A DNA stretch of 64,000 nucleotides from Zygnema circumcarinatum SAG 698-1b (taxonomy: Eukaryota > Plantae > Zygnematophyceae), in contig CM074804.1 of assembly GCA_037447605.1 (NCBI GenBank), forward strand, positions 6,301,909-6,365,908, written 5' to 3'. The notes below the pieces were generated by a model. That model saw nothing but the letters and a program-made list of their open reading frames with translations. It did not search any database and was not told the origin of the DNA. Positions 2,162 to 50,027 of this stretch are shown one piece after another; within the stretch, counting starts at the first letter, position 1; every line of letters begins with the position of its first letter. The position numbers were made by a program, and so were the translations under genes.

Positions 2162-6784
<4,623 letters not shown>

Positions 6785-27145: not shown

Positions 27146-30100
27146 ATGCAATGGTTGCAGAGGTTATGGGTTGGGAAGAAGAACGGGGGAAGGCTGTTGC
27201 GGTTAGGCCTGCTGCTAATTCCTCTCGCCTACATTCTCGCTCTGCGTGTCTTGTTCACTCAAGGAAGTGATAATCCCTGGCAGCAGAGGAAGTGGGAACA
27301 AAGGCAGGTGCAGCTGAGGGAGGAGCGGCGCGACGCTTTGCAGTTTGTTGGAATGGGGGACAACCTGGATTCTCTGAATGATGAAATTGTGGTGAATGGC
27401 ACCAGTGTGGCTATCATTCGACGGCGGAGAAGGAAGCATTCGGGCGCGGAGGAACGGGAGGAGAAGCTGGAGCGGCCGCGCTTGGCCCGGTTGCCGCAGC
27501 TCAGCAAGTCTCCACTGACCAACTGGCAACTGGTGCGTGCCTGTTGGCGCCCATTCACATTTCCACCGTCTCCGGGCGTCCACCTGTGACTGTGGATTGC
27601 CCCCCCTTGTGAACCATGGCCAAATTTGTAAAGGATTTATCGATGCAAGTTCCTGTAGGATTACATGATGACCTTGGCCGGTTCTTCAAGTAGCGGAGGA
27701 CAGCGTCCGAAGCAGCTGTTATCAAAATCGACCATACGTGCTTCACCAGATGCGCCAGCGGGATGTCCTTCCCAATCACTGTTTAGATTATGAATGGCTT
27801 CATACACCAAATTGTAGATGACCGTAACCTCTGCATCTTCTTTTTGGCTTGAGTGGTGATGATTAGCAAGGCAAACCAGTGGCCGTTGCATAAAGGGCGG
27901 ATTTTTGTTGTGGAAAGTTCTAACTCTGCAGAGACTGAGCTGTCTAAAAAATGTGGGCTGTCAGTGAGACGGGGTGGTGAATAGGAAGGCAGTGGTGTTC
28001 TGCTTTGAGAGTGCACGATGACCTTTCTGCCATTCTGCCTCTTTGCTGCTTCACCAGTAGCAGCACATTAGGAGGAAGATTTAAGCTTTCGATGGTAAAG
28101 CTTTAAGCTCGGCAGTTATTCAGAATACGGTCAAGTGAAATATACTGTGCAGTGCAAAAATGCTTTTCTAGTCGAGGGATTGTCTGAGTCTTTTGCTGTA
28201 ATTGTCTACTGTTGAGTTTGTGCCCTTTCGTATTCGTAAATTGCTCTCTGTTGTCCATTCAACCCCCCCCGAATTGCCGGTGCTGAGTAGAGCAGAGAAC
28301 TACAATCTCAAGTGAAGGACAGCCTGAAATTCGAGGTACATTGTGGAGGGGTGCAGAGGCCCCGCATCGCTATCTGTTTGGTTGGAGCTGCCCGCGACTT
28401 CCATCTGACCGGCCCCTCCATCGTGGAACACCTCCTCCGCGCGTACGAGCACAGCGACGTGTTCGTGCACGCCCCCCTCGACGAGAGCGCGCAGCGTCTC
28501 TCCCTCCTGCAGGCCGCGGCCCCGCGCGTCGTCAACCTGCGCATCGCGCCTGACGTGGCCATCAACGAGTCTGACGTCACGGACTACGTGCTGCGATGGG
28601 TGCGCAGCGGACCCGAGTACGTCACCAGACAGGTGAGAGGGCGTATTTTTCTGCCCCCACTTTCCTTGGGCAAGCCTTAGGGACTGATCTAGGTTTAGAA
28701 AGTGAGAACTCAGCAAGTAAGCAGCAAGGTTTCCTGTTTTTTCATATGTCGTTTGACTCCTACGTTTACTTCCTTCCATCGACTCCTTCGCGCTCTCTCA
28801 GTTGTTCCTTTTTGAATTGCTTTTATAGAGTGACAGAAAGTGAAGGGCTGAAAACCTGAAGCGTTGAATTAGTTAGATACTCTATCATGTCGCAGTTAAC
28901 GAAGCAAAAGTTGAAACGTTCAGGAGTTCACAGAGCTACTCCTTTGCTGGAGGTATTTCGAGCGTATAAATATCAAGCTTGCATATAGTGGAGGAACACA
29001 TGCAATCAAGATGTCAAGTAAATGTATTTGCATGACGTGAGTGATGATGAGCGATTGACATTTAGAAGCAGCTAACCTACAAGTTATAACCATAATTATG
29101 ACCTTACAGAATGCGTACCCACCGTCAGTCAACTCGAGAATCCTAACAGTGCCCATGTGCCGAAATGATGCGTGCGATGCAGCAACTGATGCAGCAGTTC
29201 AAAGCCATAGAGATGTGCGTCCCCATGATCACCGCCTTCGAGCAGCAGCACCGCTTCCGCTACCGTTGGGTCCTCCGCACCCGCGCGGACGGCTACTGGA
29301 CGGGCCCGCCCCCCCCCCTCCGCCACCTCGAGGCCGCGGCCTACACCGTCCCCGCGGGGTGCGACTGGGGGGGGCTCAACGACCGCCTCGGGGTGGGGCG
29401 ACGGGGAGTCAGCTGGAAGGGCCTCCGCCGCCTCAGCGTGCTCAAGGAGCTTGCCTCCTCCGGCAGCAACTTCAATCTCAACGCAGAGGGAGCGTTCCAT
29501 GCGCAGCTAAAGCACTTACATGTGAAAGTGGGTCGCGCAAGTTTTCCCTTCTGCATCCTCAGCAGGAAGAAAGGGAGTCTGGGGTTTCCGGTGGCGGCAG
29601 CTTTGAGCTCCACTGCAGCTCTGAATGGTGCCAAGTGTCGACCGTGCACTCCAACTGTGACTGGGAACAAGTCTGTAGAGTATATCTCACAGCTACCGGA
29701 AAAGAGAGTGTTTGGGCCCAGCGTTCATGGTGTAGACCTCTGCGAGGCAGAGGATGGCTGGGAGGATGGCTGGGAGGCGGTATACGATCGAGACGCTGGC
29801 CCAGAATTTGCGGCAGTGAGGAAATACATGAATCAGCGGAATCTGACAGAATGTGAGCGTGACTGGCGGGAGTTTCAAAGTTCAGTTCTTCGATGGGACG
29901 GACCACCCCCCCTTGTGATTTGCATGCGCTCGTTTTTGGGACCCGTGCAAAAATTAGGATATCCTGGAGGAGACTGGCCCCTGTTTCCACAGCTCCTTTC
30001 GCCTTCCAGCGTTGTATATGTGGTTGCGAGTGACAACTTCTCTTGGGACTATAAGCTCATCAGGCAGCACAAAGTGGTTCTTCACACCTTCGACAGCACA

Positions 30101-30816
30101 CCTGAAGGCCTGCGATGGGTGCAGGAGCACTTTGAGAATTTGCCCCCTCTCTACACACATCATCCATGGCTTATAGGGCCATCAAACACGCAAATAAAGG
30201 TGAGCAATATTTTTTGTCGACATTCTTTGAATCACGGCATTTTTTGTGCATAAATTTTCAATTCGAGAAGATTGTTGAAAGCATGTTCAACGAAACAGAA
30301 TATAATGGCACAGTCGTGAGTGCCATCCAGATGATCAAATTATTTGCTGAATATCCCGATGTGAAATGGGGACGGGTTTCTCAGGTCTACCCTATGGATT
30401 TGGTGGACCGGCCCTTCGAATATGCTCTGCAGCTGCCAGAGAATATGGTTGAGGAGACAGTTCCGGGCATCCCGGTTGAGAGTCGCTCTGTGGAGAGTAC
30501 AATGTTGAAGCTGAATCACACGCATGTGGATGTGCTTAGGATCGGCGGCCACAGAACGCTGCATGAAGCTCTTTTTAAAAAGTGGATCGCTGATGGGCGC
30601 TCCCCGCCTGTGTGCCAAGTGATCATCTCGTTTTTGAAGGCAGAAAAGCACTTTGGCAGTGAGGCCGGGAGGAAGGAGCTTCTAGGGCTGAGGGAGCTCG
30701 GGCTTGAGCTCGCGATCTGCATTCCCCGTGGAGCCATACCGGAAGAACGAGTGTTTGAAAGTTGCTTGTTTTTCTCAGTGCATCATTGTCCCAAACGAAA
30801 GTCAAACTTGCCTTAA
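27146..30816 (+). CDS. Paralog 1: type II membrane protein, DUF7796-like (putative GT-like) domain fused to degenerate FkbM/Methyltransf_22-like domain
   Basis: Exon 1 has one TM (LLRLGLLLIPLAYILALRVLF). Exon 2 (~28291-28632) RIAICLVGAARDFHLTGPSI. Exon 3 (~29183-30199) RTRADGYW, GGLNDRLG, LNGAKCRPC, then LSPSSVVY..HTFDSTP. Last exon STMLKLNHTHVDVLRI..PVCQVIISF; its acceptor position is uncertain. Confidence 0.8.
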
Positions 30817-32069
30817 ACCTTATTGTGCGTTAGTAGGTTCTCATTTTGTTGTTATCTAGCAGCCATTTCATTCATTCTTTGAGTCAGTTGCTTGTACAGG
30901 CATGGACTTTGTTTCTAGGGTAACCGCTTACTGCAGATTATAACTCCATAGACTCCCGTGGGTACCATGCCATTTAGAGCTCTTTGCCCGACATAGGAGA
31001 TCGTCAGTGTTCCTTTAATGCAGGAGCATAGGTGTTGATAGATGCGATTAGGGATTTTTCAGGCGGGCAATTCTGTTGTAATGAGTGGCGAGCCTGCGAG
31101 GTAGTGTGTCAGAAAGCAGGATAAGTTGTAAGCAGGGTGGCTGCTGCGGGCCTGTGCAGGGCACTCACAGCAAAACAGTGCCCGCATGTGTTTCTAATGT
31201 TGAGTGTATCGTGATGCCACTGCACAAATTTTGGAGCAGGAAGTTGTTTGCCTCTGCCCAGGCCTGGGGTCAAAGTTGCCATGCGACAGGAGGCTGATCT
31301 TTTCATTGGAATACTGAAATTAGGAGGGGATAAGGTGAAAGCAATGAAAGGGAATTAAATATTTGCCTCACCAGTAACTTGCAGCGGTGAATCTCTTAAT
31401 TGGGCCGCGATATGTGCTTTCCTTCCTTATTATAAAATTAAAATAACTTCCACATCTACATTCCCATTCCCTTTGCCCATTAAGCAGCGCATGACATACT
31501 TTAGAAACATTCAGAAGATGCCGTTCCATATGAGACCCCCAAGTGAGTGGAAATCGATAATGGGATTCTCCTCAACAGATACGATCAGAGGTTAGTTCTA
31601 TGTACAAATGTGAAGGTAACTGGAGATCTTCACTGAATCGGCATGCAAGCACTTAACCCCCCTCTAGTCTGCGCGGCCTCTGGCTTTCCAAAACAGAAGC
31701 CACGGGGGGAGTTTATACGGTCCACCACCTAGTTGGATGCTTCATCGGCGACCCTAACTATTGGTGCGAAGCATTTCTCGCTTTACTAAGTAACGCAGCT
31801 TAACAAATTGTCATTGCCTAATTTTCTACGCTTATCTTACCTGCTTGAATGGCGGTTGGCTGCCTTCTTTTGGCGTCCTTTGTGAGCATCTACGCCTACT
31901 GGACTTATTGCCTGCATAATGCACAATCAGAATAGATACACCCCAGAGCCTCTGCCTTTGTCTGCCGAACACAAATCGTCAGAAAACAAGAAGCGGAGAT
32001 ATGCCTTGTCACTCGGACGCTGCGCCATGGAGACTCAGCCGGCTTTGCAGGAGGCAGGCTTTGAACGTG

Positions 32070-35017
32070 TCAGTGCCAGCCAAGAGAAGAGAGAGCCGCC
32101 ATGGCCGCCAGGGAGAGAGGATACAGCGCGATGGCGAGCAGGCCCATCCACAGGCGGAAGGTGCTTCTCAAGCCGCCCACGGCCCCCACAGCGAGGCAGG
32201 CCAACACCACCACCGCCACCTGCACTCCCCACCGAACCATTTACTCGGCCGCCCGGCCCATGCAAATGCTTGAGAGAAGGAATTTCGTGCAGCGTTAGAA
32301 GGGCTCTAATTGACAGGAATGCTCACGCATACCCTGAAGACGAAGGGGGGATACGATTCAGCAAGGCCAGAGCAGGCACGGGCTTACCTCGGGAGCAAAG
32401 TTCCATTCCAGATTATGATAATATACAGCGCCATAAAGGGTGGCAAGGCAGAGCGTGTTTGTCATAATTACAGCACCATAAACCTGCAAAATAGACAGTT
32501 ACAGAATACCCAGCTAAATGCAAAGGCACAAGGAGTAAAGCACAATACGGTTCGCCGTTTCGTTTCTTTGATCTGCTTCGTTTTGTGCCTCACAAGCTCT
32601 GGACAGGAAATAACGGTGAAATTATGCGAGCGCTGAACCGTCGGAAGTTTTGAGAAGTTCTACACAAACCTGCCGCTTTCTACGACAGCGGCTCTGTTTG
32701 CAGCTGCGAATAATACTTCAGGCGGCACTGCAAATTCATTCAGGTACATACGTCCTCCTCCCCACCGAACACATTGTCCCATGCAATCTCTCGGTTTAAG
32801 TGTAGCTCTAAAGGAGTGGCGCCCGAAAAGTAGAGGAACGGAATTCACCTGGCTGTGAGCCAAAGCCATGCCCGACCGAGTCTTGCTTCTTGCGAAGAGG
32901 AGAGTGGACAAAAATTCACTTGAATCTGCAGCCATCGGAGATATGACAAACGAGACGTAGAAGGGCGGGATCCCAGTGGCAGTCGACAAATCTTGCAGAG
33001 CTTGCACCTGCAGCGACCAAAGCATGAAAAGATTTCACTTTCGAACGTTTTGCGGTAATCCTCTTTATCTGAGGTGGCCCAGTGCGGTTTTGAAACCACC
33101 CATTCCTGCTTCCGTCTCCAGTAACTATTTGCTTCTGCATTGTACCGCAAAATCTGTTGCTTGTACGCTCTTCTTCTGCTCTCCAGGTGCATGAATGGTC
33201 CTCACTAGTTTCTGATTCAAGAGGCAAGAGCGCACCATGGGATCCGAACACACGCCGACCAGGCCAAAGCCGAGAATAAGAAGTGAGAGAGCAGAGGGGA
33301 GCACGAGCCACCGCGGCTTCTTCTTCGCGGCCAACAGCAGAACAGGGCCCTCCTCTTCGTCCCTAAGCAGCGGAGCCTTGAGATTGTCCTCCGATTTCTC
33401 CGTATTCACAGAACTTAAGTTGATTATAGCCTTCTCCAGTTTCTGTCCCCTCCCAACAGATGGGATTTCAATACAAACCTTACAAGTTTTTAGGCTAGTG
33501 GGTATTGCTCGAAAGTTACCTGCGCTTGGGAGTAACAACAACCAAGAGAAAGATATCGTTGATGTCCTCTGATTACAAAACAACTGAGTTCGATTCGAGG
33601 CCCATGCGCTGAAAGTTGCGCCCAACTGCGTCGTCACTGCCAGTCTTTCTTTTAATGTAATTCAATTGCAGAGGATGAATGGCTGCACTCACTCCGTCAT
33701 CCTCCGCCGGCTGCAGTGTTGCACAAACACAGTCGTCCTCACCGCCTGCAGAGTGTGGCGACGAAACTCCGATCTGCTCCGCAATGCGAGGCCAAGTAGA
33801 AGAGTCAGACCCTTCTCAATACCACCTTTCCTGCGGGGAGGTTTTCCCGCCTCACCCCTCCTGGAGTAAATCATGGTCAACTATGCAAGAAGAGTGCGGG
33901 CGATTTTGAAGCGACCTACCAGTAGAGAGTGCGAGAGAGAGAGAGCGAGAGAGAGAGAGTGAGAGAGAGAGAGGCCAGGGGCTCGCCTGCTGCGCGCTGT
34001 ACAGCAGCGATGCAAGCAGTGCCAGAAGTGCCCCGACCAGCACCACAGGAGGGCTTTGAATTCCCAAGGACGCAGGAATCTGCCATGCCAGTCGCATCCC
34101 CTACCCACCGCATTACTCCAAAAGGCGGCAGCATCGCCCGCTGAAGGAGACTTCTGCATTCAGCCATGGCCTCCTTCCAGACGGAGGCTGTGCTTCCCAC
34201 CTGCACCAGCAGAAAGAGCGACGACGACGCAGCTACCATCCACGCCGCCGGCTGCACCGCTCTGCGCCCTCCCACCCACCCTCCCACACTCCTTCAACTC
34301 TCCGCAGCCCCCCTTCCTTCGCCCCCCCCCCTCGCCTGCTGTCCGAGCTGCAGCGAGAGGGCCGCCCGCCTGCGCTCACCGCAGAGGGGTGACGCCGGTG
34401 GCAGCGAGGTCCCACGCACGTGTGAGCGCGCCGTCCAGTGCTTCGCCGCCGGCGTCGAGGTCGCAGCGGCCCACGACAACGGCGCCGCCCCACGCCAGCG
34501 TCAGCAGCATCAGGGAGTCGCCCGCGATCACGCCCATGGCCGCGCCCACCGACTCCTGCAAGGGCAGCCTCCGCCTTTTCAGGGTGATCCCCCCTGGGAG
34601 GGGGGGCAGGGCCAAGCAGCTGCCATGGATTCGGAGTGGGGGCAGAAGGGAGGAAAAAAATAGAGGAGGAGGCGAACCTCCACGGATTCTTTGGAGCCAT
34701 ACGCCGCCGCTCTGAGGATGAGCAGGCAGAGAGGGCCCGAGTTAAGGACCGGCAGGAGGAGGCCGCCAATGAAGGTCGGAGGCCATACCTGCACCCTCTC
34801 TCCTACAGATGAATTCCGTGACATGTGTGCGTTTCTGTGAGTGTGATAGAGATAGAGATGGAAAGGGTGCGACGGAAAGAGAAAGAGAGACATCGACAGA
34901 GGCAAGGAAGAGGCCCCAACAGACCTCCAACAGAATCTCCGCGGCGCGAGAAATGAGCGACGCTCCCGTGAGGAGGAGCGGTCCATACAGCGCCACGAGG
35001 CCCGCCGCCATAGTCAT
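32070..35017 (-). CDS. NCL-like sodium/calcium exchanger (CaCA superfamily), apparently lacking the EF-hand loop
   Basis: Exons encode YGPLLLTGASLISRAAEILLE, IGGLLLPVL, AMGVIAGDSLMLLTLAWGGAVVVGRCDL, SDPMV, LSTATGIPPFYVSFVISPMAADSSE, YGAVIMTNTLCL..LEWNFAPE and STFRLWMGLLAIALYPLSL, collinear with plant NCL. Confidence 0.88.
33932..33973 (+). repeat. (GA)n microsatellite in an NCL-like gene intron
   Basis: Imperfect GA dinucleotide run. Confidence 0.85.
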
Positions 35018-35368
35018 GGCTGCCCCCGTCTCTCTCACTCTCTCCCTCCCTCCCTTTCTCCCTCCCTCCCTCCCTTTCTCCCTCCCTCCCTCCGGCAGGC
35101 GCGCAGGCGGAGAGAGGCCTTCGCCGACAGGGGCAGAGCGTTCGGGCGCTCCCATTGGTCCTCGGGCCACGTGGTGTGCCAGCTGGCACCCCGCGGTTGG
35201 CCGGAAACGGGCGCTGCTGAATGGCTTCCGCATTCTGCGGAGGGAGCCATACGGTTCTATGTGAGCGCCGTTCCGGTTCACGGTTGACGGGTGTCACGTT
35301 GACCTTCGCACGTGCGGCTGTTTGAAACTCGAGTTGGACGCGGGACGGCTTCAAGTGCTCTTTGGGTT

Positions 35369-35917
35369 GGGCGGAGGGCGAGGAAGAGGGGGAGGGCGAT
35401 GGAGAGGGAGGGGGAGGGAGAGTGGAGGGGGAGGGAGAGGGAGAGGGAAGGGGGAATTACCTGCAGGAAAAATCAAACACGGCTAGGGTTAGGGGTAAGT
35501 TTAGGGTGAGCGTTAAGGTTACGGCTACCGTTAGGTTTAGGGTTAGTGTTAGGGAAGAGGGACAGGAGGGAGAGGGGGCCGGAGAGAAAGTGGAAAGGAA
35601 GGGAAGTGAGAGAGGAGGGGGAGGGAGCGGAGAGGGAGCGGGAGAGGGTCTGCGAGAGAGAGGGATCGGGGGAGAGGGAGCGGGGGAGGAGGGGGAGGGA
35701 GGGGGCTGGAGAGGAAGAGGAGAGGGAGGGGGGTGGCAAGGGCGTAAGAGAGAGAGAGAGACGGGGAGGGGGGGGCAGGAGAGGGAGAGAGCCAGGGAGA
35801 GGAGGGAGAGGGGGCGGAGAGGTAGAGTGAGTGGGAGAGGAGAGGTAGGGGGTGGAGAGGGAGAGGAAGAGGAGGGGGAGGGTGACGAAGAGCGAGAGGG
35901 AAAGTAGAGGGAGGGGG
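35369..35917 (+). repeat. Polypurine (G/A) low-complexity tract
   Basis: About 550 bp composed almost entirely of G and A on the + strand, interrupted by the TTAGGG-like array. Confidence 0.9.
35483..35554 (+). repeat. Degenerate interstitial telomere-like (TTAGGG)n array, 12 units
   Basis: CTAGGG TTAGGG GTAAGT TTAGGG TGAGCG TTAAGG TTACGG CTACCG TTAGGT TTAGGG TTAGTG TTAGGG in strict 6-nt register. Confidence 0.7.
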
Positions 35918-36524
35918 CCGCTGCGCATAGTTCTGGGAGGCGGATAGCGTGGGCAGGTGGTGTGTGCTCTGCTCGCTCGCAGTCCAAAATGTGTGCATGT
36001 TTTGGGCAGTACGGCCAAGGATGGCTGGATGGACTCGTATGAAGGAGCACAAATTGGTGCATTGAGAGCACGGGTAGAAGAAGTAGACGTAAGATTGCAT
36101 GCCTTTTGGTTGCTGAGTGGACCTGTCTTTCTTTTTTGACTGCAGCCATGATTGTCTGCGTTTGTAACCGTCAGCTCCTTGAGAGAATAAGCGGAATGCC
36201 TTACCCCAAACAGGATGATAGTATATGAAAGGCGGTTGTGACTGAGGATTTTCCGGCATACGCCGCATTAATGAAATTGTAGCGCGCTGTCGACTGCTGC
36301 GTCCTTTGAAAAGCCCTCGATGAGCCATACAATGGTTTCACTGGTCTCGTTGACTAAAGCTCTAAAAGAACCAGGTGTTAAGTTGTCCAGCAAGATGTCT
36401 ATCGAGCAGCCGACAGCTTTTGTGGGCAGTTTCTTGACCAGCAGTATTGCCCCGTGTTGCAGGTGAGGAGCTCAGCTCCATTGTGGGCAGCTGCCGGCAT
36501 TGCTGTTAGCCAAACTTGGAAAGG

Positions 36525-39500
36525 ATGTTGTCATACGTGCGCCGCGGCCCAACAAAACGAAGAACTCTAGTGCCCGAGTCCCCTAGACGGATACCGTCAA
36601 GACGTCCTCAAAGATTTTCGTTTTTTTGTCTGTTAACTTTTTGGACGCTTGTCGTGGTTTGCGGCATCACTCAAGTATTTCTCTCTGGGACGATCTCTGG
36701 CATCCTCCGGGCATTTTCCAGATTATATGATGATGTGGATCACTTTCAATACAGGCTAACGGAGGTATGTAAAGTCCTTGTTAGTTGATCCATTGCTATA
36801 TTCACACAATTGAAGCAGGCCTCGAATTTGAAGGGTTTTAGCTGTAAATCGTTTCGTTTGCCAGCTATGGCTAGTGATGGTCGCCGAAGCAGCCATTGCT
36901 GAAAGTGCTGCTCTAGGACTGCCGTCTTGGCAATCATTGGTGGGCAAGCAATGGGAAAGCATTATTTCCTCGACTGCATGAATGTTCACTTTGCCCGACC
37001 GTACAGTTTCTGACAGTAACGAACGGCATTGTGAGTAGTCGGCCTTGTGAATATGAGCACTAGAGGTTGATCGTACAAACACGACTTCCTAGGAACTTGT
37101 CTTTGAATGAAAAGGCTTCTGGTCGATGTCGTCTAGTGACTAGGTGAGGCGGCCTTTGCTTTCTGTCCATTCGGATCGAAGGAGGGATTGGCTTGCAGAG
37201 TGTGGGCTCACTCGGCCTTCCTTTAAGGCTTCCTTATCCTGTATTTACGGAGTCTCTTCCTAAGCAAGAGTATGAAAGGAGTAACAGATATTGTGTTGAC
37301 ATCATAACTTACCCAATATCTCCAACTTAGCCATGTAACTGATAACAAAGACTAGGTTCGCATCACGTTCTACAATCGAACACATGATTGAAATGGAGAG
37401 AATGCTTATACGTGTAACTTTCATTGAACAGAACTCAATGAATTTTCAGTGGCTGTGCAATGAGAAGTTTTCAATGTGAATTTCAATGCATTTTAGTGCA
37501 TTTGTCATCCAATGCACGATCACCGCATCAAACAAAGCAGCTTGCTGAAGGGAAACTGCTTATCTGTTCACAGTCGTTCCCAGCATTGTAGGTGATAATT
37601 CCCGGGGTTAGGCAGTGGCAATGTCCTTGTGCAAGCAGCATGTCTTGGAAATCAACCTCAGGTGGCTTCATCCATGCGACATAAGGAAGCATTATGATGA
37701 GTGTTTGGGAAAACTCGCTAAATATGGCATGTTTGAAAACGACCTGTTTGCCAGACATTCGCATTCTTATGAGACAGGAAATCGAGACCATAATTGAAAT
37801 GTTGGAATCATCTCAGGCGTGTCATGCTCACGCATCAACTTTGCCCGTGATAGATGTCATTTGGCACAGGGCTTTCATGCGGAAGTGTAGTTCTTTAATT
37901 AGTTTTAGAATAAAAGACACTGACAGGCGTCATCCAGCAAGGGTTGCTTGACGGTTTAGTTCTGATTAGTGGCAGGGGCTACTCTGAGTTTCCATGGAAT
38001 ACTAAAAATAATTGAATGTGCCAGTGAGCAGTGCAAATGTTGAATCACAATGGAAGCGTTTCTTTCATGATGAAACATTGACATGCATTCTTGTCACTAA
38101 ATGTACGTCGTGGAAAGCGGCGTCCTTTGCCCTTCTTTAAATCTCTTCTCGGTATTTTCCTTGGGGCCATGTCAGGAGGGCTACATTCTGCCTTAAGTTG
38201 AAATGGGTAAAGGTCGTCCCAAGTGAGGCCCTGTGGTTGAAAAGGACCCTGTACGGCATTTTTTCACGATCGATAACACTAGCTTCGCATCTTAAGAAGG
38301 TTTTTTGGCAGAAGCTGCAGGAATGCCAACTTACAGACGGGCGTCTTTGCTTTAACATCTAGAATGAGTGAAATAGGGACCATGTCTGGATTAGGAGTTG
38401 GCATTTGCTCATGCTTGACAGATTGAAGAACACGACATGACGCAGGAATCCTGCATAAGGTAATCATGTGCAGAGGAGACATGCATTAAGTGCTCTTTTT
38501 TCATTCAAGGTAATAATTGTTAATAAAGAGAAAGACGTACGAGTGAGCTCTCGCTTAAGCATGCCGATACCTTCTCTCTCCCAAATTGCCATCCTCTGGT
38601 GTTTTGGAATGTCCAGGAAATCGAGGAGGAAGCACTTCCCTCACTATCAAGCACAGATCGTACTGCTCTGCCCACACAAAAGCCCCTGAATGTGGTAAGC
38701 GCAGAGACTTGCTCATAATGCAATGTAGCCAGTTGCGCGCTGCGCTAAACGTGTTTATGGCTGTCCTGTTCATAGTAGGACTGTTGTGGTTCAGCCTGTG
38801 GTGTTGAAACTGGCATAAGGAATACAACTCTAATCTTCAATTGGTCTGAGGTGACTTTGGAAATGGACATTGGACTTTGGACTTCGGACTGGAAATGTGC
38901 ATGTTATTTCTGACATGCTTTTTTGGCTTTCAGGAGAAAATACAGCTAACATTGCTTTTTTTCCGGTTGCTGGAAAACGGGTTCGACATATTTGTGATTT
39001 CGCAAAAAGATGTAACTTAAAGGAAACGTTGTTTTAAAGCTGGCGGAAGGAGCTTTGTTATTGTGATGTAGAATTTTGTTCGAGGAGCGATTTGCCTGGT
39101 GGGGGCAGCCCGAGACTTCGAGCTGACAGGACCCTCCATCAAGAAGCACTTGCTGGGCAGTTACAGGAATGCGGATGTGTTTGTGAACATGGCATTGGAC
39201 GACAAGAGCTACAAGCTCACGTTGCTCAGTGACATCAGCAACCTCGCTCGCGTGCGTCTCTTTGCGCAGTCGCCCATTGAGGAGGGGAACGCTACCACAG
39301 TGCTGGCTGCACACGGCTCTCCAAATGGGATTCAGGTAGGATATGGTAGCTGCCCGACAGCCCGTTTGTCAGATGACTTTAATCAGCCTATTGATAGCTT
39401 GGTTTTAGCACCTTAGAGCAACTGTAGAAACAGCCCAAGTTCCCAGGCCAGTTCCCCCCTCGCCCCTCCCCCTCCTCCTCCTCTGGGTTGGCTGGGCTCA

Positions 39501-41036
39501 AGGTGTCATACACTCTACTCTCCCAAGAGCTATAAAGTTCCGATTCCACACAGAGGTCAATTGCGTGTTTCGGAACGTTAACAAGGAGATGAGTTGGCTA
39601 CAACTTGTGTACACATGCAGGGTCTCTTGCAATATTTCGACCTTGTGGAAGGTTGCCTAGACTTGATTGATGACTACAGCAGTAACCACTCGGTGACTTA
39701 TAGGTGGATTATTCGCACTCGAGTTGATACTTTTTGGACGGGGCCACCCCCTCACTTCTTTCTGGAGAAGGGCATCTATGTGGTGCCGGAGGGTTCAAGA
39801 TTTGGCGGATTGAATGATCGTTTTGGATTTGGAAGCTTCGAGGAAAGTCGCGTAGCCCTTAGGCGCCTGACCATGCTGGAAGCGTTGTACAACGCAGGCC
39901 GGAAGGGCCTCAACTCGGAGCAGGCATTTGCCGGCCAACTCGACGTTTCGGGTATCAAAGTCTTGTCTGAAAAGTTCAATTTCTGTGTAGTCAGCAGACG
40001 TCTGTATTCGTGGTCGACCAAGGCTGCCAACTTTGGTGTTCCTGTTATTGCTTTATCAAGTCTCGGTCCCATGAATGGGGCCAAATGCAGGCCATGCACT
40101 CCCATTACTAATGCATCCGAGTCAGAGGAGATACTTCAGTCATTTTCCCGAAGTTGGGGCTGGCCAGGAGACAACCCCGAGTTAGAGCTTTGCAATGCCA
40201 CGGAGCCATGGGAGAAGACCTGGCGAGCAGTTTTTGACCGAGTAGCAGGGCAAGATATCGCTGCTGAACGAAAACGAATTGTGCGTCAAACTCGCCTTTC
40301 CTGTGTGAAGAAGTTCAATATGCTTCAGAGCATCCCTGGGGGGTATGAAGGCCCTCCCGGAAGTGTAGTTTGCCAATTAAGGAAGTGGGGTTCGTTTGAA
40401 ATATTAAAGTATGCAGCTGTGGCACAAGTGCCTGTCTTCCTCCCCCCATTGGATAAATCTAGTATCGTCTACTCCTTAGAATTCAGCAAGGACTTGGAGC
40501 TGGAAGCATTGATTCATCAACGGACGAGGTCTTCGATCCATCTGTTTCAAAGCCATTCTCCGAGGCTAACTTTGTATCAGCAAATGCTTGCATACTTCAA
40601 TGGCATAACCACTCATCAGTGGGTTGTGGGGGAGAAAAACGGTGGAGTGAAGTCTTCACTCTTATCGAGTTCCCTTACAAAGGAGGGATTTCGCCCAAAA
40701 ATAGCCTTGAAAGTCGGGCCTTCTGAGGTGGATTCTAAGGCACTGAAGTCTACAATGGCGGATTTGGGGCATAATAGTGTGGACCTCCTGATGCTGGCAG
40801 TGAGTGAAGCGACTCTGCCCGGAATCATAGGCAGGTTCTTCACCTGGGATAGCAAAATTCCTATCTGTCAGCTAATTCTTAGGTTGGAGCCGGTGATTGA
40901 AGGTGCAACGAGAAAAAGCTTTGTGAATCGAGTGAGGGAGGTGTTTCGAACAGTTGGGTTCTTCATGATACATTGTAAAGGAAAGTACAGCGAGGAATTT
41001 TGCTTATTTTTAAGGGGAGATCCTTGCAAAAAATAA
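36525..41036 (+). CDS. Paralog 2: type II membrane DUF7796-like + degenerate methyltransferase-like fusion
   Basis: Exon 1 (36525-~36764) has a TM (FSFFCLLTFWTLVVVCGI). Exon 2 (39072-39335) GAICLVGAARDFELTGPSI..GSPNGIQ. Exon 3 (39621-41036) GLLQYFDLVEGC, RTRVDTFW, GGLNDRFG, MNGAKCRPC, LDKSSIVYSL, TMADLGHNSVDLL. Splice phases are consistent. Confidence 0.85.
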
Positions 41037-42202
41037 AAATGAAAGCTGCTAGTCTTGTGTTGTTTTTGTGGCGGGACGATTGCCTGCCTGCTGGCCTCTC
41101 GGAGCCGTCGCACCTGTCTGGATGTAGGGCGGCTGATGCCTCCGTCCCTCTTTGAGCAGGGGTGCGCTTGAGAGCCGCTTGCAGGCAGGTGATTGGGCGT
41201 TCTAACAGCTTGAGAGAGGTTGCAGCCTGAAGATGCATGCATCGGGTTTGGTCAAAACACCAAAAATATTCTTCTATAGGTTTTCCGGGAGAGCTGCTCC
41301 GACCGTGCGCACCTGTAAGGTTGTGACTGACTGCTATGTAACTTCATAAAGGTACTTTGCTGAGCGAACTGCCTGGCAAGCGGCACTGCGGGATTTTGGA
41401 GCCCGCCCTCCATCAGGGAGGAGGCCCTCGTCGGGAAGTTGCAAAAGCACAGACAACTTCGTGAAGAGGGCGTCGGACGGTGAAGTATAGAAGGCGCCAG
41501 CACGTCAGCACTGCTCGCAGCCTCCCTTCCTCGCCCGACGGACTGGCAAGCACCCTGACTTGACTGACGTCATCACAGCAGTGGGTGGCTGCCAGTGGGA
41601 GGGCCGCCCGTCCTTGGAGATGTGCGTTGTGGCGCAGCTTGTCGAGGTGTCACGTTTGTCACGGTGTGCCACCGCCTTAGGAACAGTATGCGATACTCTG
41701 AGCCCAATGGTTGGCTGCCATTGCAATCGTTTGGAACCATCACCTAGAAAGTGCACAATGTTGTACGCCGACCGGCGGTTTGGACCTCTCATCACGTATC
41801 TAAATCGGGAGCATCGGGCTCCAACCTACCGCAAATTAGCGCGTGTCTAAATCTGAAAAAGTGGATCGAAAAAACGACGCTTCTTTTTTCTGATCCTAAA
41901 ACCCCATGCCATGCCATGCCACGGCCATGGCCAACAAGACCACCATGGGGAACCACGAGACGAGGGCCCGCCCTCCCAAGGATGAAACAAGCCAAACTTT
42001 GGCTCCTGCGTTTGTGCGCTAAACGACACGCGAAACGCCTCCGTACGGCGGGAGCGGAGGGGCGGAACGCGGCGGCTTCTGATTGGCGCATATGCTGACG
42101 TGGCCCCCTGGCCTTTTGCCTTTTACCGCCGGGCCGCGAGGGAGGGAACTTTTCGAAAAGTAAATGAAAAAAACGTTTCTGAGTTTCCTTTTCGGTACAT
42201 TA

Positions 42203-42359
42203 GGGGCTGTCAGACTTAACAAAATCTTACGAAAAGTGTTACGAAAAAAAAGGTTACGAAAGTACTCCGCCGCAGGAGGATCGCGATTATACTGGAGTAC
42301 TCGTTCTGATGTCAAACTTACGAACACGCGTACTGAAATTTTTTAAGTCTGACACCCCC
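42203..42359. mobile_element. 157-bp MITE, PIF/Harbinger (Tourist)-like
   Basis: TIRs GGGGCTGTCAGACTTAA / TTAAGTCTGACACCCCC (16/17 match), TTA on the left flank, no coding capacity. Confidence 0.75.
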
Positions 42360-42364
42360 AATTA

Positions 42365-42948
42365 GGGCGTGTCAGACTTAAAAAATTCTCGTAATACTAA
42401 AAACTCGATATTCGTAACATTTCGAGTCAACGTCAGTAAAACTAAAATTCCCGAGCCTAGTTTTTCGCACTCGCGGCGCGGTCCTGTTCGCACTCCGCGA
42501 TCGCCGTCTTCGCACTTCTCCAAACGCCGTCTTCGCAACTTCGCTCTCGCGCGGGGCCCTCAGACTTAGAACCAGCGCCGGCGCGGCGCGCGGAGACCGC
42601 TTGTCGTTGTGTCGTGTTGCGCGTCACGGGCGGGCGCGGGCGCGGGCGCGGGCGGGAAGCCGGGAAAACAACCATGACGTCACGTTGACGCGATTCTCGC
42701 CAGTATTTTCTTCGCACGTCCATTTCGGCGCCTCTTTTGGGTGCGAACAAAATCGTGCGAAGAAGAGCCCTTTTTAGTAAACCCCACGGGTCAATCTTCG
42801 AAACGTTGACCCGTTGACTTAGCACAGTTGACTTCCGTTCGGTTTGGTTTAGGTTCGGGGGCGCGATGATTTTTAGTACTTAGTAACCTCGATTCTCGTA
42901 ATACTAAAAACTCGATATTCGTAACATTTTGTTAAGTCTGACACGCCC
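42365..42948 (+). mobile_element. 584-bp MITE copy A, Harbinger-like
   Basis: Perfect 17-bp TIR GGGCGTGTCAGACTTAA, TTA on the left flank. A second, inverted copy lies immediately downstream. Confidence 0.85.
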
Positions 42949-43165
42949 TTCAATTTATGTCACATCCCTCTCTTGTCGCGATGCGAGGGCCCTAAGGCGT
43001 GTCAGACTTAACAAAATGTTACGAATATCGAGTTTTTAGTATTACGAGAATCGAGGTTACTAAGTACTAAAAATCATCGCGCCCCCGAACCTAAACCAAA
43101 CCGAACGGAAGTCAACTGTGCTAAGTCAACGGGTCAACGTTGCGAAGATTGACCCGTGGGGTTTA

Positions 43166-44910
43166 CAGTCTAATCACGTTATAGTGACTGTGTCGGTCCC
43201 CACTAGGGATGGATTAGTTACGACTATATAATATATATTATATTATACAACTGTGACGATTAGATAACGGCTGATATACAGGGTTCGTCAAATAGGGGAT
43301 TTCGGCTTAAGATAGGGGACTGTCCCCTAAATTGGTTTTGTAAAAACACGTAAATATGGACTGTACGAACGAAACCGTACATGTACGGACGAGACAGGAA
43401 TACAGGAAGACAGGAATTGTTTGGGAGAAAGACGAGTTTCGAAAGAGGTTGACAGACTTTTCATTGGAAGGAACTCTTCACTGCAAACAGTTTGATAGTT
43501 TGACCGCTCTTCGAGGGTCTCTTTGAGTAGTTTGCATCACTTCTATAGCTGTCTTGTTCAGCCTAAAACTCCTAAGGGAGTGGGACCATTTTTCATTTCA
43601 TTTCTAATTTTAGTTCCTATTTCAGTTTTTCTTTTGTGACTACACCTAGAATTTCAGAGGTTATGATTTGGAATAGAGTTTTTGTGAGGAAATTACAAGA
43701 CTATGATGGATTCTAAAGTGGTACTTGGAGTAATTAATGATGGATGGAAAAGGAAATAGAGAGCTTAGGATTGGATCTACAAAGTTTTCGAGCAATTGGG
43801 TTTTTGAATAAGCAACTATATGTTGTGATTGCCAAATGCACAGTTGTTCTAATTGATTGGTAAAATTTACCAATCTATAAGAGTCGAAGAGGTTGCACCA
43901 GTTTCTAAAGCCGTGTTGTAATACCAACAAGAAAAGTTCATATACATCATTGCTATCGTGGTTGCAAATGCAATTCATTTCCTTTTTGTTTTTAACCAAA
44001 AAAATGCTTTTTTGGGGCTTGTGTGGTATTTAAGTTGAAATCACGTAAACTAATCTCAAAATCTTACATAAATAAGCTATTTACGATATTTAGGGGATCT
44101 CCCCTATTTGACGAACCCTGCTGATATATATTAATTTACAACGCCTTTACAACATGTACGGACGTACGGACGTACGGTCGAACGACTGTACGGTATTATG
44201 CGGTACGGATGCACGAGCAGACTGTGTGAACCAGACGGACGCATTTCGCAACGCCAACGCCAAAACGACCTAATTTTGGTATGGTACGACCGTACGACCG
44301 TACGACCGTACGAGTACGGTCGTACGGTCGTTAATTGTTCAAAACGAGTGGGTATAATATATGTAATAAAGTGTTTTACTTTGTAATATATTACTACTTT
44401 TAAACCCGTTGTAAAATATATAATTTATTCGGAATTTATAACGCGGGCCATCCCTAGTCCCCACACATTTGTGTCACTATATCGGTAATGACCTGTTTGT
44501 CATTTCACATTTATAGTAACAATATTATTACATATGTTTTTGCGGTATATCCGTACTACTTTGATACCGTACATTGTACTTTTTGGGCAGTCCCACGTGG
44601 GTAGGTGTGTACGAACCCTAGTGAGCATGTGTACGGACAAGTTGATATGTACGGTCAAATCGATATTTGACGATATTAGTCGATAATATGTACGGTCGTA
44701 ATATATTTGTTAACGCATATTCCAATACGTGGGTGGATAATATCGACATTTTGAATATATAGCAACAATCAGGGTTTTTCAACGTCATTATATCCGTAAT
44801 GGCGTCACTACTGGCGCAGGATCTGCAGTGGTGCAATTCCGTTCCCGGAAAAAAAGTCAGTATATCCATGCTGTTCTTATAAAAAGTGTCACTATAACGT
44901 GATTAGACTG
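43166..44910. mobile_element. Non-autonomous Tc1/mariner (pogo-like) element
   Basis: Perfect 23-bp TIR CAGTCTAATCACGTTATAGTGAC. TA duplicated at 43164-43165 and 44911-44912. The empty site (single TA) is visible in MITE copy A. Confidence 0.9.
43279..44120. mobile_element. Non-autonomous hAT element (842 bp)
   Basis: Perfect 21-bp TIR CAGGGTTCGTCAAATAGGGGA. Perfect 8-bp TSD CTGATATA at 43271-43278 and 44121-44128. AT-rich interior with no transposase ORF. Confidence 0.92.
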
Positions 44911-45552
44911 TACTGAAAAGGGCACTTCTTCGCACGATTTTGTTCGCACCCAAAAGAGGCGCCGAAATGGACGTGCGAAGAAAATACTGGCGAAAATCGC
45001 GTCAACGTGACGTCATGGTTGTTTTCCCGGCTTCCCGGCCGCGCCCGCGCCCGCCCGTGACGCGCAACACGACACAACGACAAGCGGTCTCCGCGCGCCG
45101 CGCCGGCGCTGTTTCTAAGTCTGAGGGCCCCGCGCGAGGGCGAAGTTGCGAAGACGGCGTTTGGAGAAGTGCGAAGACGGCGATCGCGGAGTGCGAACAG
45201 GACCGCGCCGCGAGTGCGAAAAACTACGCTCGAGAATTTTCGTTTTACTGACGTTGACTCGAAATGTTACGAATATCGAATTTTTAGTATTACGAGAATT
45301 TTTTAAGTTTGACATGCCCTATTTACCGAAAAGGAAACGCAGACAGTCCGGAGAATAATAATGAGCGTGTCGGCGGGCGAGTGACAGGCTGGGGCATGCG
45401 CGCGGCGCGTGTCGGTGGGGCGAGGAGATAGGGGTCGGCGCGGAGAGGGAATCTGCAGATCGCCCAAAATACTCCGACTGCTCTCGACCGGACGACTCCA
45501 TGCAGCATCGTAAGGACCGACAGCATCCCTTGGAGGGGACTGAACAATAATT

Positions 45553-45753
45553 GGGAGAGTCAGACCTTGACCATAGCTTACGAAATTCCCGAATTCCTTA
45601 TACTAAAAAGTCACTTCTTTCGTGTACGAATTCCGGGTCGGGATCCGCGGCTCCGCCGAGGCCAGCCGTACCGAAATGCGTGCCTATCCAATGCTTAATT
45701 CGCCTGACAAGCTTACGAAATTGATTTGGCGATGGTCAAGGTCTGACTCCCCC
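45553..45753. mobile_element. 201-bp MITE, Harbinger-like
   Basis: TIRs GGGAGAGTCAGACCTTGACCAT / ATGGTCAAGGTCTGACTCCCCC (21/22 match), TAA on the right flank. Shares the GTCAGAC core with neighbouring MITEs. Confidence 0.75.
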
Positions 45754-46640
45754 TAAAGCAACCAGATTCTGTCGCCATCACAGCGAGACTTGTCTCTCCA
45801 GAATGTGCCTTCTACCGATACTTTGGAGCTTATTTTGAAGCCACTGCGTCCTTATACTTCGCTATCGACAAATCGGTGGTCGAGGTGGTTATTCGAGGTA
45901 GTAGCGAAAGTGGCGGTCGAAGAAAAGGAACTCGGCAGAGGGGGGTCACGAATATCGAAAACACTTGCACTTTTTTGGCGAAAATGTAGGGAGGGCAGCA
46001 GAGGGGTTTGGGTGAGGCCTTGGGTGGAACGAGAGAGGCATTTTCAATTGTTCAGTCCTTGGAGCAGTGAGCCGTGACTTGCGCCTCCGGAAACCACGGG
46101 GACAGCTGCGCTTTGTGGTTAAGTTCCCGTCTGCATCGATTCAACTCTACAAAAGAATTGAATTCAGTCATTTTGTTGTGAATGTCAACCCGGGGTGAAA
46201 ACGAAGTCGAACGACGATGCTTCTTCATGCGTCACTAGCCATATCAGCAATAATGTGAGAAAAACTGTGGCTTCGAATGCTACGAACAAGTCAACGACTT
46301 CGTTCAAAAGTACAAACAAAGTACCTGACAAGGTACAAAAAGTACCAAAATGTAACACAATCGGTACATGCAAGTACAAAAGAGTACAAAAGCGAAAAAA
46401 GTCCCTTGAATCCCGAAAATCAAAACTCAGAATGTTCCCGGAAATAAGTAAAATACGGGATTTTTAGGGAATTCCTTTATTTAACGATGCCTGGCCTGGG
46501 CGCGGCGCGCCCGGACTGTCCGTACGTACGTACGGGGCCGGCCCGGGCCGGGGCGGGCCGAGATTCCGAGAACCACGAATAGGAAGGCATGGAGGGAGAG
46601 AGGGGGGCGAGGGCGGGGCAGGGAGGCAGCGCGTGCCTGC

Positions 46641-49600
46641 ATGCGAGAAGGCGCGGGAACAACAAGCGGAAAAAGAATGTCCGGCCACGCTGATGGGAAA
46701 GAAGTAACACGATGGAGCTGCCTCTCTAAGGCAGCAGCGTTGAAATGGACTGCAATATTGCTCGGTTCCTTCGTTGTGGGGTGTTTGTCGCTGGTGGTTC
46801 TAGTCGTCCTCAGTGAATCAGTCCTCCCTGAGGACGCTGCGGCCTTATCGTTCCTCAGCAGTGGCCTCGACTTGTCTCGACAAGTTCCCAAGGAGGTGAG
46901 TGCAGTCGTTGCTGGTTCGCCCTACGCACCCTGCTGTGTTCTTCGGCTTAACGCGCGCCGTTTATCCGGTTCTAAGCATTGCATTTTTTTCTGGTGTATC
47001 CTCGGCTACTGATGCTAGCCAACGAAACCGAGGCAGGCGCAGTAGCTGCCTCACTTCCGCCGCCTTGGCCGAACGTACAAGGATCAGAGATTTGGAAAGG
47101 AAAGGATAAGAAAATCTGCGGGTGCTTAGGGTCCTGTTTTGTGTACTTATGCAGAAGAGAGCCTGAAGGAGTAATGACCTCTGGCTTGTCCAAAGCCCAT
47201 CATCTCAAGGGAACTGGCAGTGAAGATTGGGTTGTCGCACGCTCTATGTAACAAAAACCTTAAGGTACTTCACGAAAGAGATCCAGTTTGCAGTCTCAGC
47301 TGAACAATTAGTCGAGGTTTCCTAGATGCAGACAGCCGTTCTCTAAAGTGAGCGCATGCCATGAGGCAGGACTTCTGCATAAATTCAGGCTTTTGCAGAG
47401 GGGAATTTGATCAAAACATGTTAACAAGAAGAGATAGAGAGAAAGACATCTTCTTTGAGAAGATTACTTCGCCTCTTCTGCAATAGTTATGACCTCCTGG
47501 CGGTTTGGAGTACTCAGGCCCCTGAATTTGATGAAGGAGCCGCTTCAAATCCGGTTCCAGGGCCCAAATGCCCCTAGACCTGGTGAACGCACTCATGCAT
47601 CCATCATTTATAACGTTTGCAAGCGGGTGATGGGCCGAGGTTTTTAGTTGTAGAGCATTTGTTTAGAGTTGCCAATATCAAACGCATGACGTAATGAAAA
47701 GGGAGTGCATACAGTCCCGTGCGCTGGACGTCATGCACGTCTATTAGGCACGGAGTAGACATAGAGAAAGGTGTGTGGGTGCCAGAATTTACTTTGTAAT
47801 ACTACGTTCGCGCCAGTTTTTGGAGGAGCGAGGCTGCTGAAATTGTGAAAAGGGGAATTCGCATTTGCCTCAGTATCGAGCGCATATTGTGCAGTTTGGC
47901 GTACCCAAAAAGCTACTCAAAGCGTTGACCACTCGTTGCTTACGTGATGATGTTGGAAGTGTTACAAGAAAAATCTTCAGTCCGTTCACACATTTGCCAA
48001 CAAACGAAACACATGGAAGGACAACGAGAATGACTTAAGACATTTGGATTTAAACCTGGGATCTGGATCGGAAGTGTGAAGCGTACATGTAACGCGAGTT
48101 TACGGCTTCTGATGACTTGTCTGTTATTCTTAGTGCTTCTCCTTGTTTGAATATTTTCCATACAACTCTGGACCTGAACAATTTGACTGGGATGAGACTT
48201 TTGAGGAAACGAGCAGAGGGAACTTTGGAATTGCGATGCAGGAAACTCCTCGAGGAGCGATTTGCCTGGTGGGGGCAGCCCGAGACTTCGAGCTGACAGG
48301 ACCCTCCATCAAGAAGCACTTGCTGGGCAGTTACAGGAATGCGGATGTGTTTGTGAACATGGCATTGGACGACAAGAGCTACAAGCTCACGTTGCTCAGT
48401 GACATCAGCAACCTCGCTCGCGTGCGTCTCTTTGCGCAGTCGCCCATTGAGGAGGGGAACGCTACCACAGTGCTGGCTGCATTCGGCTCTCCAAATGGGA
48501 TTCAGGTAGGATATGGTAGCTGCCCGACAGTCATTATTCAGATGATGGAAATCAAGCCTACTCAGTTTTTCAGTTTTCAGCCTATCAGTTTTTGGCCTGT
48601 AGGCTTCAGCTCACAGCTGGTCTGGCACATTAAGCAGGTTCCGTGTTTGCTGAACTTGTGTACAAGTGCAGGGCCTCTTGCAATACTTCGACCTTGTGGA
48701 AGGTTGCCTAGACTTGATTGATGACTACAGCAATAACCACTCGATGAATTATACGTGGATTATTCGCACTCGAATTGATACTTTTTGGACGGGGCCACCC
48801 CCTCACCTCGTTTTAGAGGAGGGCATCTATGTGGTGCCGGAGGGTTCACGATTCCTCGGATTGAATGATCGTTTTGGATTTGGAGGCTACAAAGAAAGTC
48901 GTGTTGCTCTTAGCCGATTGAGTATGCTGGCAGATCTGCAAAGGGCAGGACTTAGGAACCTGAACTCGGAGATGGCCTTCGCCGGCCAACTCAATGTGTC
49001 TGGAATTCATGCTTTGCCAGAGAAATTCAATTTCTGTCTTCTCAGCCGAAGGAGCTACAATTTGACTGCGGAACCTCTTCCGTGGGAGGCTCCAGTACTT
49101 GCTTTGACAAGTCGGGGTCCCATGAACGGGGCCAAATGCAGGCCTTGCACTCCCGCCCTTGACGCGGACCTGTCCAGAGAGAGACTGATGAAGCTTAAGC
49201 GAGTATCTGGGTGGCCGGGAGACAACCCCGACATGCAGATTTGCAATGCCACGGAGCCCTGGGAGAAGGGCTGGGAAGAGATCTTCGACGGATTCGTAGG
49301 CCAAAATATGGCGGCTGAACGCAAACGTATTGTGCACCGAATGGGCCGTTCTTGCGTGGAGAAGTTCAATATGCTGCAGACCATTCCGGGGGTATATGAA
49401 GGACCTCCCGGAAGTGTAGTCTGCCAATTACGGGAGTTGGGGTCCTTTGACGAAATGTTGTATGCATCTGTGGCACAAGTGCCAGTCTTCCTACGCCCAT
49501 TGACGAGCTCTAGTGTCATCTACTCCCTAGGATACAGCAAGGATTGGAATGTGGAAAAACAGATTTATCTACACACAAAGTGTCCTATCCATCTGTTTAA

Positions 49601-50027
49601 CCAGTCTACTTTAGGCTTAACTTTAATCCGGATATTGGATGGGAATAGTACAGTGAAGGCTTCTCCCGCGATGAGAATCCCGGCGATAACCTTGAAGGGC
49701 GGTGCTTCCGGGGTGGATTTGACGACGCTGGAGTCCACAATGGCGCATATGGGGCATGAAAACGTGGACCTGCTGATGTTGGCAGTGAATGAAGCGACTC
49801 TGTTCGGAATCGTAGGCAGGCTCTTCACTTGGGAGGGCAAAGCTCCTGTCTGTCAGCTGATCCTTAGGTTGGAGCCAACAAAGATTGCCGGCGCAAGGAG
49901 AAGTTTACTGGGAGGAGTCAGATTGCTGTTTAAAAAAAATGGGTTCATTATGATACATTGCAAAGGAAAATATAGTATGGAATTCTGCGTGTTTTTAAGG
50001 GAAGATCCTTGCGCACTAAAGCATTAA
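46641..50027 (+). CDS. Paralog 3: type II membrane DUF7796-like + degenerate methyltransferase-like fusion
   Basis: Exon 1 (46641 or 46677 to ~46895) has a TM (WTAILLGSFVVGCLSLVVLVVL). Exon 2 (48242-48505) is nearly identical to paralog 2. Exon 3 (48672-50027) carries the same motifs (RTRIDTFW, GLNDRFG, LTSSSVIYSLG, TMAHMGHENVDLL). Confidence 0.85.

Follow-up and report, generated by a model that had tools for sequence, protein, structure and literature searches.

Three Zygnema paralogs join a probable glycosyltransferase domain of the DUF7796 family to a motif-eroded methyltransferase-like domain

A 64,000-nt stretch of the genome of Zygnema circumcarinatum SAG 698-1b (contig CM074804.1, positions 6,301,909-6,365,908, forward strand; in the following called the window) contains three paralogous plus-strand genes at window positions 27146-50027, here called g1, g2 and g3. 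In each product, a domain of DUF7796 (PF25072), a streptophyte family of no assigned function, is followed by an extension resembling methyltransferases (MTases) of the FkbM type. A preliminary description had read these proteins as bifunctional, with a glycosyltransferase (GT) and an O-methyltransferase in one chain. The locus raises the question of whether the two domains form one protein, what each of them is and whether both still work. On balance, we favor the view that g1-g3 are secretory-pathway GT-A glycosyltransferases with a dead O-methyltransferase module, descended from an enzyme that transferred a sugar and then capped it.

Gene structures and transcript evidence

All introns modeled in the three genes are of the GT-AG type and in phase 0, and the exons contain no internal stops (Table 1). 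Spliced contigs (4 runs, 2 studies) reproduce the three introns of g1 with base precision, and single contigs span its exons 2-4, so a transcript continuing through both domains is borne out for this gene. The source runs carry no RNA label on record; the precise GT-AG skips indicate that the g1 contigs are spliced transcripts. Read contigs were applied to g1 only, whereas g2 and g3 are sequence models. In these two genes, a single exon encodes the C-terminal three quarters of DUF7796 together with the complete extension, so that the fusion can be read without assuming any splice. Along with the spliced contigs of g1 and orthologs of the same layout, this exon rules out that the fusion is an artefact of chimeric assembly or of read-through.

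Exon 1 encodes 5, 10 and 4 Lys/Arg residues in g1, g2 and g3, respectively, ahead of one hydrophobic 19-mer with a mean Kyte-Doolittle hydropathy of 2.2, 2.1 and 2.9, which predicts a type II membrane topology. The short basic tail and single transmembrane (TM) helix noted earlier thus hold for all three same-strand paralogs, as do the motifs quoted for the first domain and the extension. PF25072 matches exons 2 and 3 of every gene with 86-302 bits (cut-off 27), and together the two exons cover profile positions 2-342 of 346. The assignment of the first domain to DUF7796 is thereby confirmed; its description as a land-plant family is not, because members also occur in the zygnematophytes Spirogloea and Mesotaenium. 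Behind the domain, about 200-230 further residues follow up to the stop codon.

The extension has a methyltransferase fold and eroded motifs

AlphaFold2 modeling and a fold search of the g2 extension revealed a complete seven-strand class I Rossmann-like fold. Against a profile of standalone FkbM members, the extensions scored 14-72 bits (37 bits for g1 exon 3, shuffles <1), and g1 exon 4 reached 48.5 bits against an algal-fusion profile (shuffles ≤2.2). These independent scores, far above shuffles, rule out that the Atlas match was a wrong-frame artefact. The expected class I S-adenosylmethionine (SAM)-dependent MTase fold with affinity to FkbM/Methyltransf_22 was therefore recovered. With FkbM/Methyltransf_21 (PF05050, TIGR01444) and Methyltransf_22 (PF13383), the window copies have the fold, the strand order and the flanking sequence pattern in common, but they lack most family motifs, are fused behind a GT and carry conserved cysteines of the kind expected in a luminal protein. 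Searches with PF05050, PF13383 and TIGR01444 yielded no match in the window copies, which miss the curated cut-offs; relatives fall just below them (21.9 vs 22.7 and 31.1 vs 37.7), and Spirogloea and the ortholog P0121 reach E-values of 1e-4 to 1e-7.

Motif I (SxGxGxD), intact in Spirogloea P0003/P0004, reads VVASDN in g1, SLEFSKD in g2 and SLGYSKD in g3, the last being partly retained. The terminal acid of strand beta-2 (FD/FE) is present in g1 (TFDSTP) and replaced in g2 (FQ) and g3 (FN). The K-x-D-x-E-G-x-E motif after beta-4 is absent from all three copies, whereas Spirogloea retains EGxE and P0121 DxDGxE. All three motifs are hence eroded in g2, and in g3 all but the remnant of motif I. 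Between g2 and g3, dN/dS is 0.65 for the MTase part; for the GT part it is 0.35 (p about 5e-10). With the SAM-binding and catalytic motifs eroded, the family matches missing and dN/dS relaxed, the term bifunctional is not supported for g1-g3.

We consider it unlikely that at least one of g1-g3 is still active in both respects, transferring a sugar and then capping this product by O-methylation through a diverged SAM pocket. The complete fold in g2, a dN/dS below 1, the beta-2 Asp of g1 together with its expression through the domain, the motif I remnant of g3 and the presence of the domain in every algal-side homolog would fit such an enzyme. However, at most one of the three motifs survives in any copy, all lack the DxEGxE acids common to standalone relatives and none matches a Pfam or NCBIfam MTase family as Spirogloea and P0121 do. 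Moreover, the erosion varies from copy to copy, which resembles decay rather than a new shared motif.

A GT-A-like fold without DxD

In a fold search with a model of the Spirogloea ortholog P0003:97-442, the best Z-score and all top-50 Foldseek matches belonged to glycosyltransferases, in line with the GT-A fold anticipated for the first half. A conserved DxD metal-binding motif is absent; at the end of strand 119-124 stands R-x-D instead, with R124 kept in 93 and D126 in all of 94 aligned sequences. All invariant GT residues are kept in g2 and g3. Metal-independent GT-A enzymes without DxD exist (PMC12595478). By its predicted fold, DUF7796 is a probable glycosyltransferase without DxD.

The nearest named clusters to this domain, WavE-like proteins (PF07507) and viral GT-A-like proteins annotated as 'capsular biosynthesis', provide a lead only: they resemble it in language-model features (0.91, 161 shared) and shape (TM-score 0.55-0.64), and no match to PF07507 was obtained at E≤1. 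Uncharacterised proteins of chloroviruses and giant viruses are also among the matches of the DUF7796 model (MT325 M177L, E 5e-10). No relatives were found in PDB sequence searches with either domain, nor were DUF7796 relatives found in the viral contigs, bacterial genomes, phage records and PHROGs scanned. In the literature searched (subscription papers not covered), no paper named DUF7796. At3g26950, a candidate Arabidopsis member described as a 548-aa GT-B/FucT-like protein, was dropped.

Alternatively, DUF7796 might have the nucleotide-diphospho-sugar-transferase fold but a non-classical reaction, transferring sugar phosphate or polyol phosphate from a nucleotide donor, or acting not on a wall polymer but on a glycolipid such as the glycosyl inositol phosphoryl ceramide head group. 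We regard this as quite improbable, given the exclusively GT nature of the top matches, the type II anchoring that fits Golgi GTs and an O-MTase partner that fits sugar capping; the gene neighborhood is weak evidence in a eukaryote.

Distribution and age of the fusion

A search with g2 exon 3 returned 233 matches, of which 120 were listed. Among these 120, matches over the full length of the query number five (three Spirogloea clusters, Mesotaenium and one ENA contig), and only these five have a tail matching the MTase profile. In the others, which where named come from mosses, liverworts, ferns and angiosperms, the match extends over about 54% of the query. Land-plant DUF7796 proteins end about 100-140 residues past GAKCR, without an MTase domain. 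Among the land-plant matches, the fusion is absent. The full-length closest relatives of g1-g3 are from Spirogloea and Mesotaenium. A metagenome scan found the MTase tail in none of 45 DUF7796 loci.

The full DUF7796 domain, its invariant residues and a phase-0 intron before the GLLQYF block, at the same place in algal-type and land-plant-type loci, are common to g1-g3 and the land-plant proteins; the MTase domain is what g1-g3 have in addition. The tree computed for the GT part of exon 3 has a branch (96/89) with all nine fused sequences on one side and all 34 short ones on the other. Within the fused group, long branches form an unresolved star, in which g2 pairs with g3 and g1 stands apart. 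This topology makes the fusion an old one within these algae. The MTase domain is retained in every algal-side homolog found; in Mesotaenium it is eroded as in Zygnema. Because the listed matches include no sequence of Klebsormidium, Chara or Coleochaete, a gain in the algae and a loss in land plants are indistinguishable.

Spirogloea has eight copies in three clusters (P0002, P0003, P0004, P0129-P0133), with two paralogs about 70-90 kb apart on each of two scaffolds; one copy, P0132, is an 1868-aa model containing the fusion. P0122 and P0126 were rejected as homologs owing to repeat-driven matches. With the g2 extension alone, a word-index search gave no match, and with the Spirogloea extension it gave Spirogloea only. 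P0124 (L003 positions 3-1031), from a JGI sample, is an FkbM-type protein that stands alone, is anchored in the membrane and has the PxCQLLV block and a C-terminal cysteine in common with the fused domain. It may represent the family that donated the MTase module.

Comparison with known transferase-methyltransferase enzymes

Chains that combine a GT with an O-MTase are known. In A064R of chlorovirus PBCV-1, D1 and D2 are rhamnosyltransferases and D3 is an O-methyltransferase; D2 is inverting and needs no cation, and the rhamnose that has just been attached is methylated by D3 (PMC9614988). As in g1-g3, the GT precedes a class I O-MTase, but A064R is viral and has two GT domains; we treat the likeness as an analogy of architecture. 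WsaE of Geobacillus stearothermophilus unites an O-MTase with two rhamnosyltransferases, one chain adding sugars and capping by 2-O-methylation (PMC2943079). Unlike g1-g3, it is bacterial and soluble, with an N-terminal MTase and proven activity; here, too, the likeness is one of architecture. With a GT and a class I MTase in one chain, g1-g3 are built like these capping enzymes, while their second activity is doubtful: the motif erosion argues against both domains acting on the same glycan.

The DUF579 glycan O-methyltransferases of plants (GXMT, AGM1/2) methylate terminal sugars of wall glycans and arabinogalactan proteins (AGPs) (bioRxiv 10.1101/2025.03.14.643249); they belong to a different family and stand alone, without a GT fusion. 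Literature searches (subscription papers again not covered) for FkbM-GT fusions, for METTL24/Methyltransf_22 in connection with glycans and for the FkbM motif returned nothing.

Proposed mechanism

We suggest that g1-g3 are type II membrane proteins with a cytosolic basic tail, one TM anchor and luminal domains, presumably in the Golgi. The luminal DUF7796 domain would probably work without a metal ion, with R-x-D in place of DxD; the donor diphosphate would be held by the Arg of this motif and the conserved Lys/Arg of GAKCR, while the catalytic base may, judged by position, be the invariant Glu of N-S-E. The domain probably transfers a single sugar, either to a glycan of the wall or mucilage or to a glycoprotein. 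The C-terminal domain appears to descend from a SAM O-methyltransferase of the FkbM/Methyltransf_22 type, and the shared algal ancestor would have added a sugar and then O-methylated it. Spirogloea and P0121 probably still do both, and the bifunctional reading fits these orthologs better than g1-g3. In g1-g3, the MTase most likely persists as a folded, catalytically dead module under weak constraint, serving acceptor binding, stability or dimerisation. Land-plant DUF7796 proteins consist of the GT domain only.

Several points weigh against this proposal. The GT domain was modeled from an ortholog rather than a window protein, its GT-A matches are distant (rmsd, root-mean-square deviation, 3.3-4; 8-14% identity), and the nucleotidyltransferases IspD and GlmU appear among the structural matches at similar Z. 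Purifying selection still acts on the MTase part (pN<pS, p about 0.015, with approximate site counts), whose fold and cysteines are preserved in the three copies and in several lineages. Class I MTases are tolerant of considerable drift in their motifs. Motif loss was judged against sequence relatives; no solved FkbM-type relative was found onto which the SAM pocket could be mapped.

Genomic neighborhood and history of the copies

The description as a three-gene array is right as to three same-strand copies, but the array is interrupted. Between g1 and g2 lies a gene resembling NCL-type EF-hand Na+/Ca2+ exchangers, a family recognised from transmembrane motifs with a Pfam E of only 0.12; contigs lack the last intron of this gene, with the joint at 32221, and its 3′ end is within a few hundred bases of that of g1. 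Nested DNA transposons separate g2 and g3. The other neighbors are given in Table 1.

Table 1 Features of the g1-g3 locus (window positions).
Feature	Position	Strand	Details
g1	27146-30816	+	4 exons, 703 aa; contigs extend past stop to about 31200-31370
g1 exon 1, coding part	27146-27532	+	basic tail, TM helix 27203-27259, stem; spliced contigs verify the donor at 27533
g1 exon 2	28357-28632	+	N-terminal quarter of DUF7796, first GT-A strands; PF25072 E 1.4e-24; both splice sites confirmed
g1 exon 3	29183-30199	+	remainder of DUF7796 to about 29929, with R-x-D, ND-R, N-x-E, GAKCRPC (PF25072 E 1.2e-69); then N-half of MTase-like domain, motif I eroded, beta-2 Asp retained
g1 exon 4	30385-30816	+	C-half of MTase-like domain, DxEGxE lost, stop; intron 30200-30384 confirmed
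NCL-type exchanger-like gene	31500-34800	-	
g2	36525-41036	+	3 exons, 639 aa
g2 exon 1 (model)	36525-36764	+	basic tail, TM helix 36615-36671; sequence model
g2 exon 2	39072-39335	+	N-terminal quarter of DUF7796; PF25072 E 2.3e-24
g2 exon 3	39621-41036	+	DUF7796 C-part to 40379, whole MTase-like domain 40380-41033; PF25072 E 4.9e-90
Transposon nest	42363-45321		outer inverted repeats 289 nt, 97%
Hairpin in nest	42777-43166		171 nt
Terminal inverted repeat pair in nest	43166-43188/44888-44910		TA-flanked
hAT-like pair in nest	43204/44456		8-bp target duplication
Inner pair in nest	43279/44120		
g3	46677-50027	+	3 exons, 612 aa
g3 exon 1 (model)	46677-46895	+	short tail, TM helix 46755-46811; sequence model
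g3 exon 2	48242-48505	+	N-terminal quarter of DUF7796; PF25072 E 3.8e-28
g3 exon 3	48672-50027	+	DUF7796 C-part to 49430, MTase-like domain 49431-50024 with about 20-aa deletion relative to g2; PF25072 E 2.4e-84
g2/g3 near-identical tract	39080-39360 and 48250-48530		
CDC48/p97-like AAA ATPase	3375-4659	+	recognised by eye
GT2/GT21 (ceramide-glucosyltransferase-like) open reading frame	51188-52900	-	single exon, 570 aa, several TM segments; tail to tail with g3
C2-domain exon	60131-60640	+	
Polyketide-cyclase/START-domain exons	61974-63974	-	

In the exon-3 GT part, g1 is 38-40% identical to g2 and g3, not closer than it is to other species, and g2 and g3 are 70% identical, with a dS of about 0.6 in exon 3. 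Exon 2 and 24 bases of intron 2, about 280 bp in all, nevertheless differ between g2 and g3 at only two positions, and none of 85 codons shows a synonymous change. Such near-identity beside so diverged an exon 3 indicates recent gene conversion, or possibly a local assembly collapse. That only g1 is functional, g2 and g3 being decaying duplicates with frames open through recency, is highly improbable: the use of read contigs for g1 only, the transposon nest upstream of g3 and the relaxed MTase part with its deletion in g3 would agree with it, but at this dS neither a stop nor a frameshift occurs in 450 codons, the GT part is clearly constrained, and the invariant GT residues, splice sites and signal anchors are all intact.

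Implications for DUF7796 and algal glycans

O-methyl-rhamnose and O-methyl-galactose occur in the rhamnogalactan-protein of Spirogyra (PMC7612518). Which rhamnosyl- and methyltransferases make such AGP ends has been described as unknown (bioRxiv 10.1101/2025.03.14.643249). A link between the DUF7796 fusion and these sugar ends is a hypothesis. In its full form, to which we assign a low probability, DUF7796 would be a hitherto unrecognised, metal-independent GT-A family in land plants and the algae that are their sisters, akin to A064R-D2 and WavE-like proteins, whose algal form adds a deoxyhexose and O-methylates it in the secretory pathway, actively in Spirogloea and possibly in g1, making proteoglycan ends with O-methyl-rhamnose or O-methyl-galactose; land plants would have kept the transferase, possibly as an AGP rhamnosyltransferase. 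As their DUF7796 lacks the MTase, the 3-O-methyl-rhamnose of bryophytes would need another methylase.

For g1-g3 themselves, the probable loss of the second activity lowers the claim. The fusion is nevertheless a clue to the function of a family of mosses, liverworts, ferns and flowering plants, because an MTase partner implies that the DUF7796 product was O-methylated in the algae. Its value lies in assigning a fold to a plant family not studied before and in the nearly intact Spirogloea fusions, which lend themselves to testing. The series of an MTase intact in Spirogloea, eroded in Zygnema and Mesotaenium and absent from land plants is a candidate difference in wall chemistry at the boundary between algae and plants.
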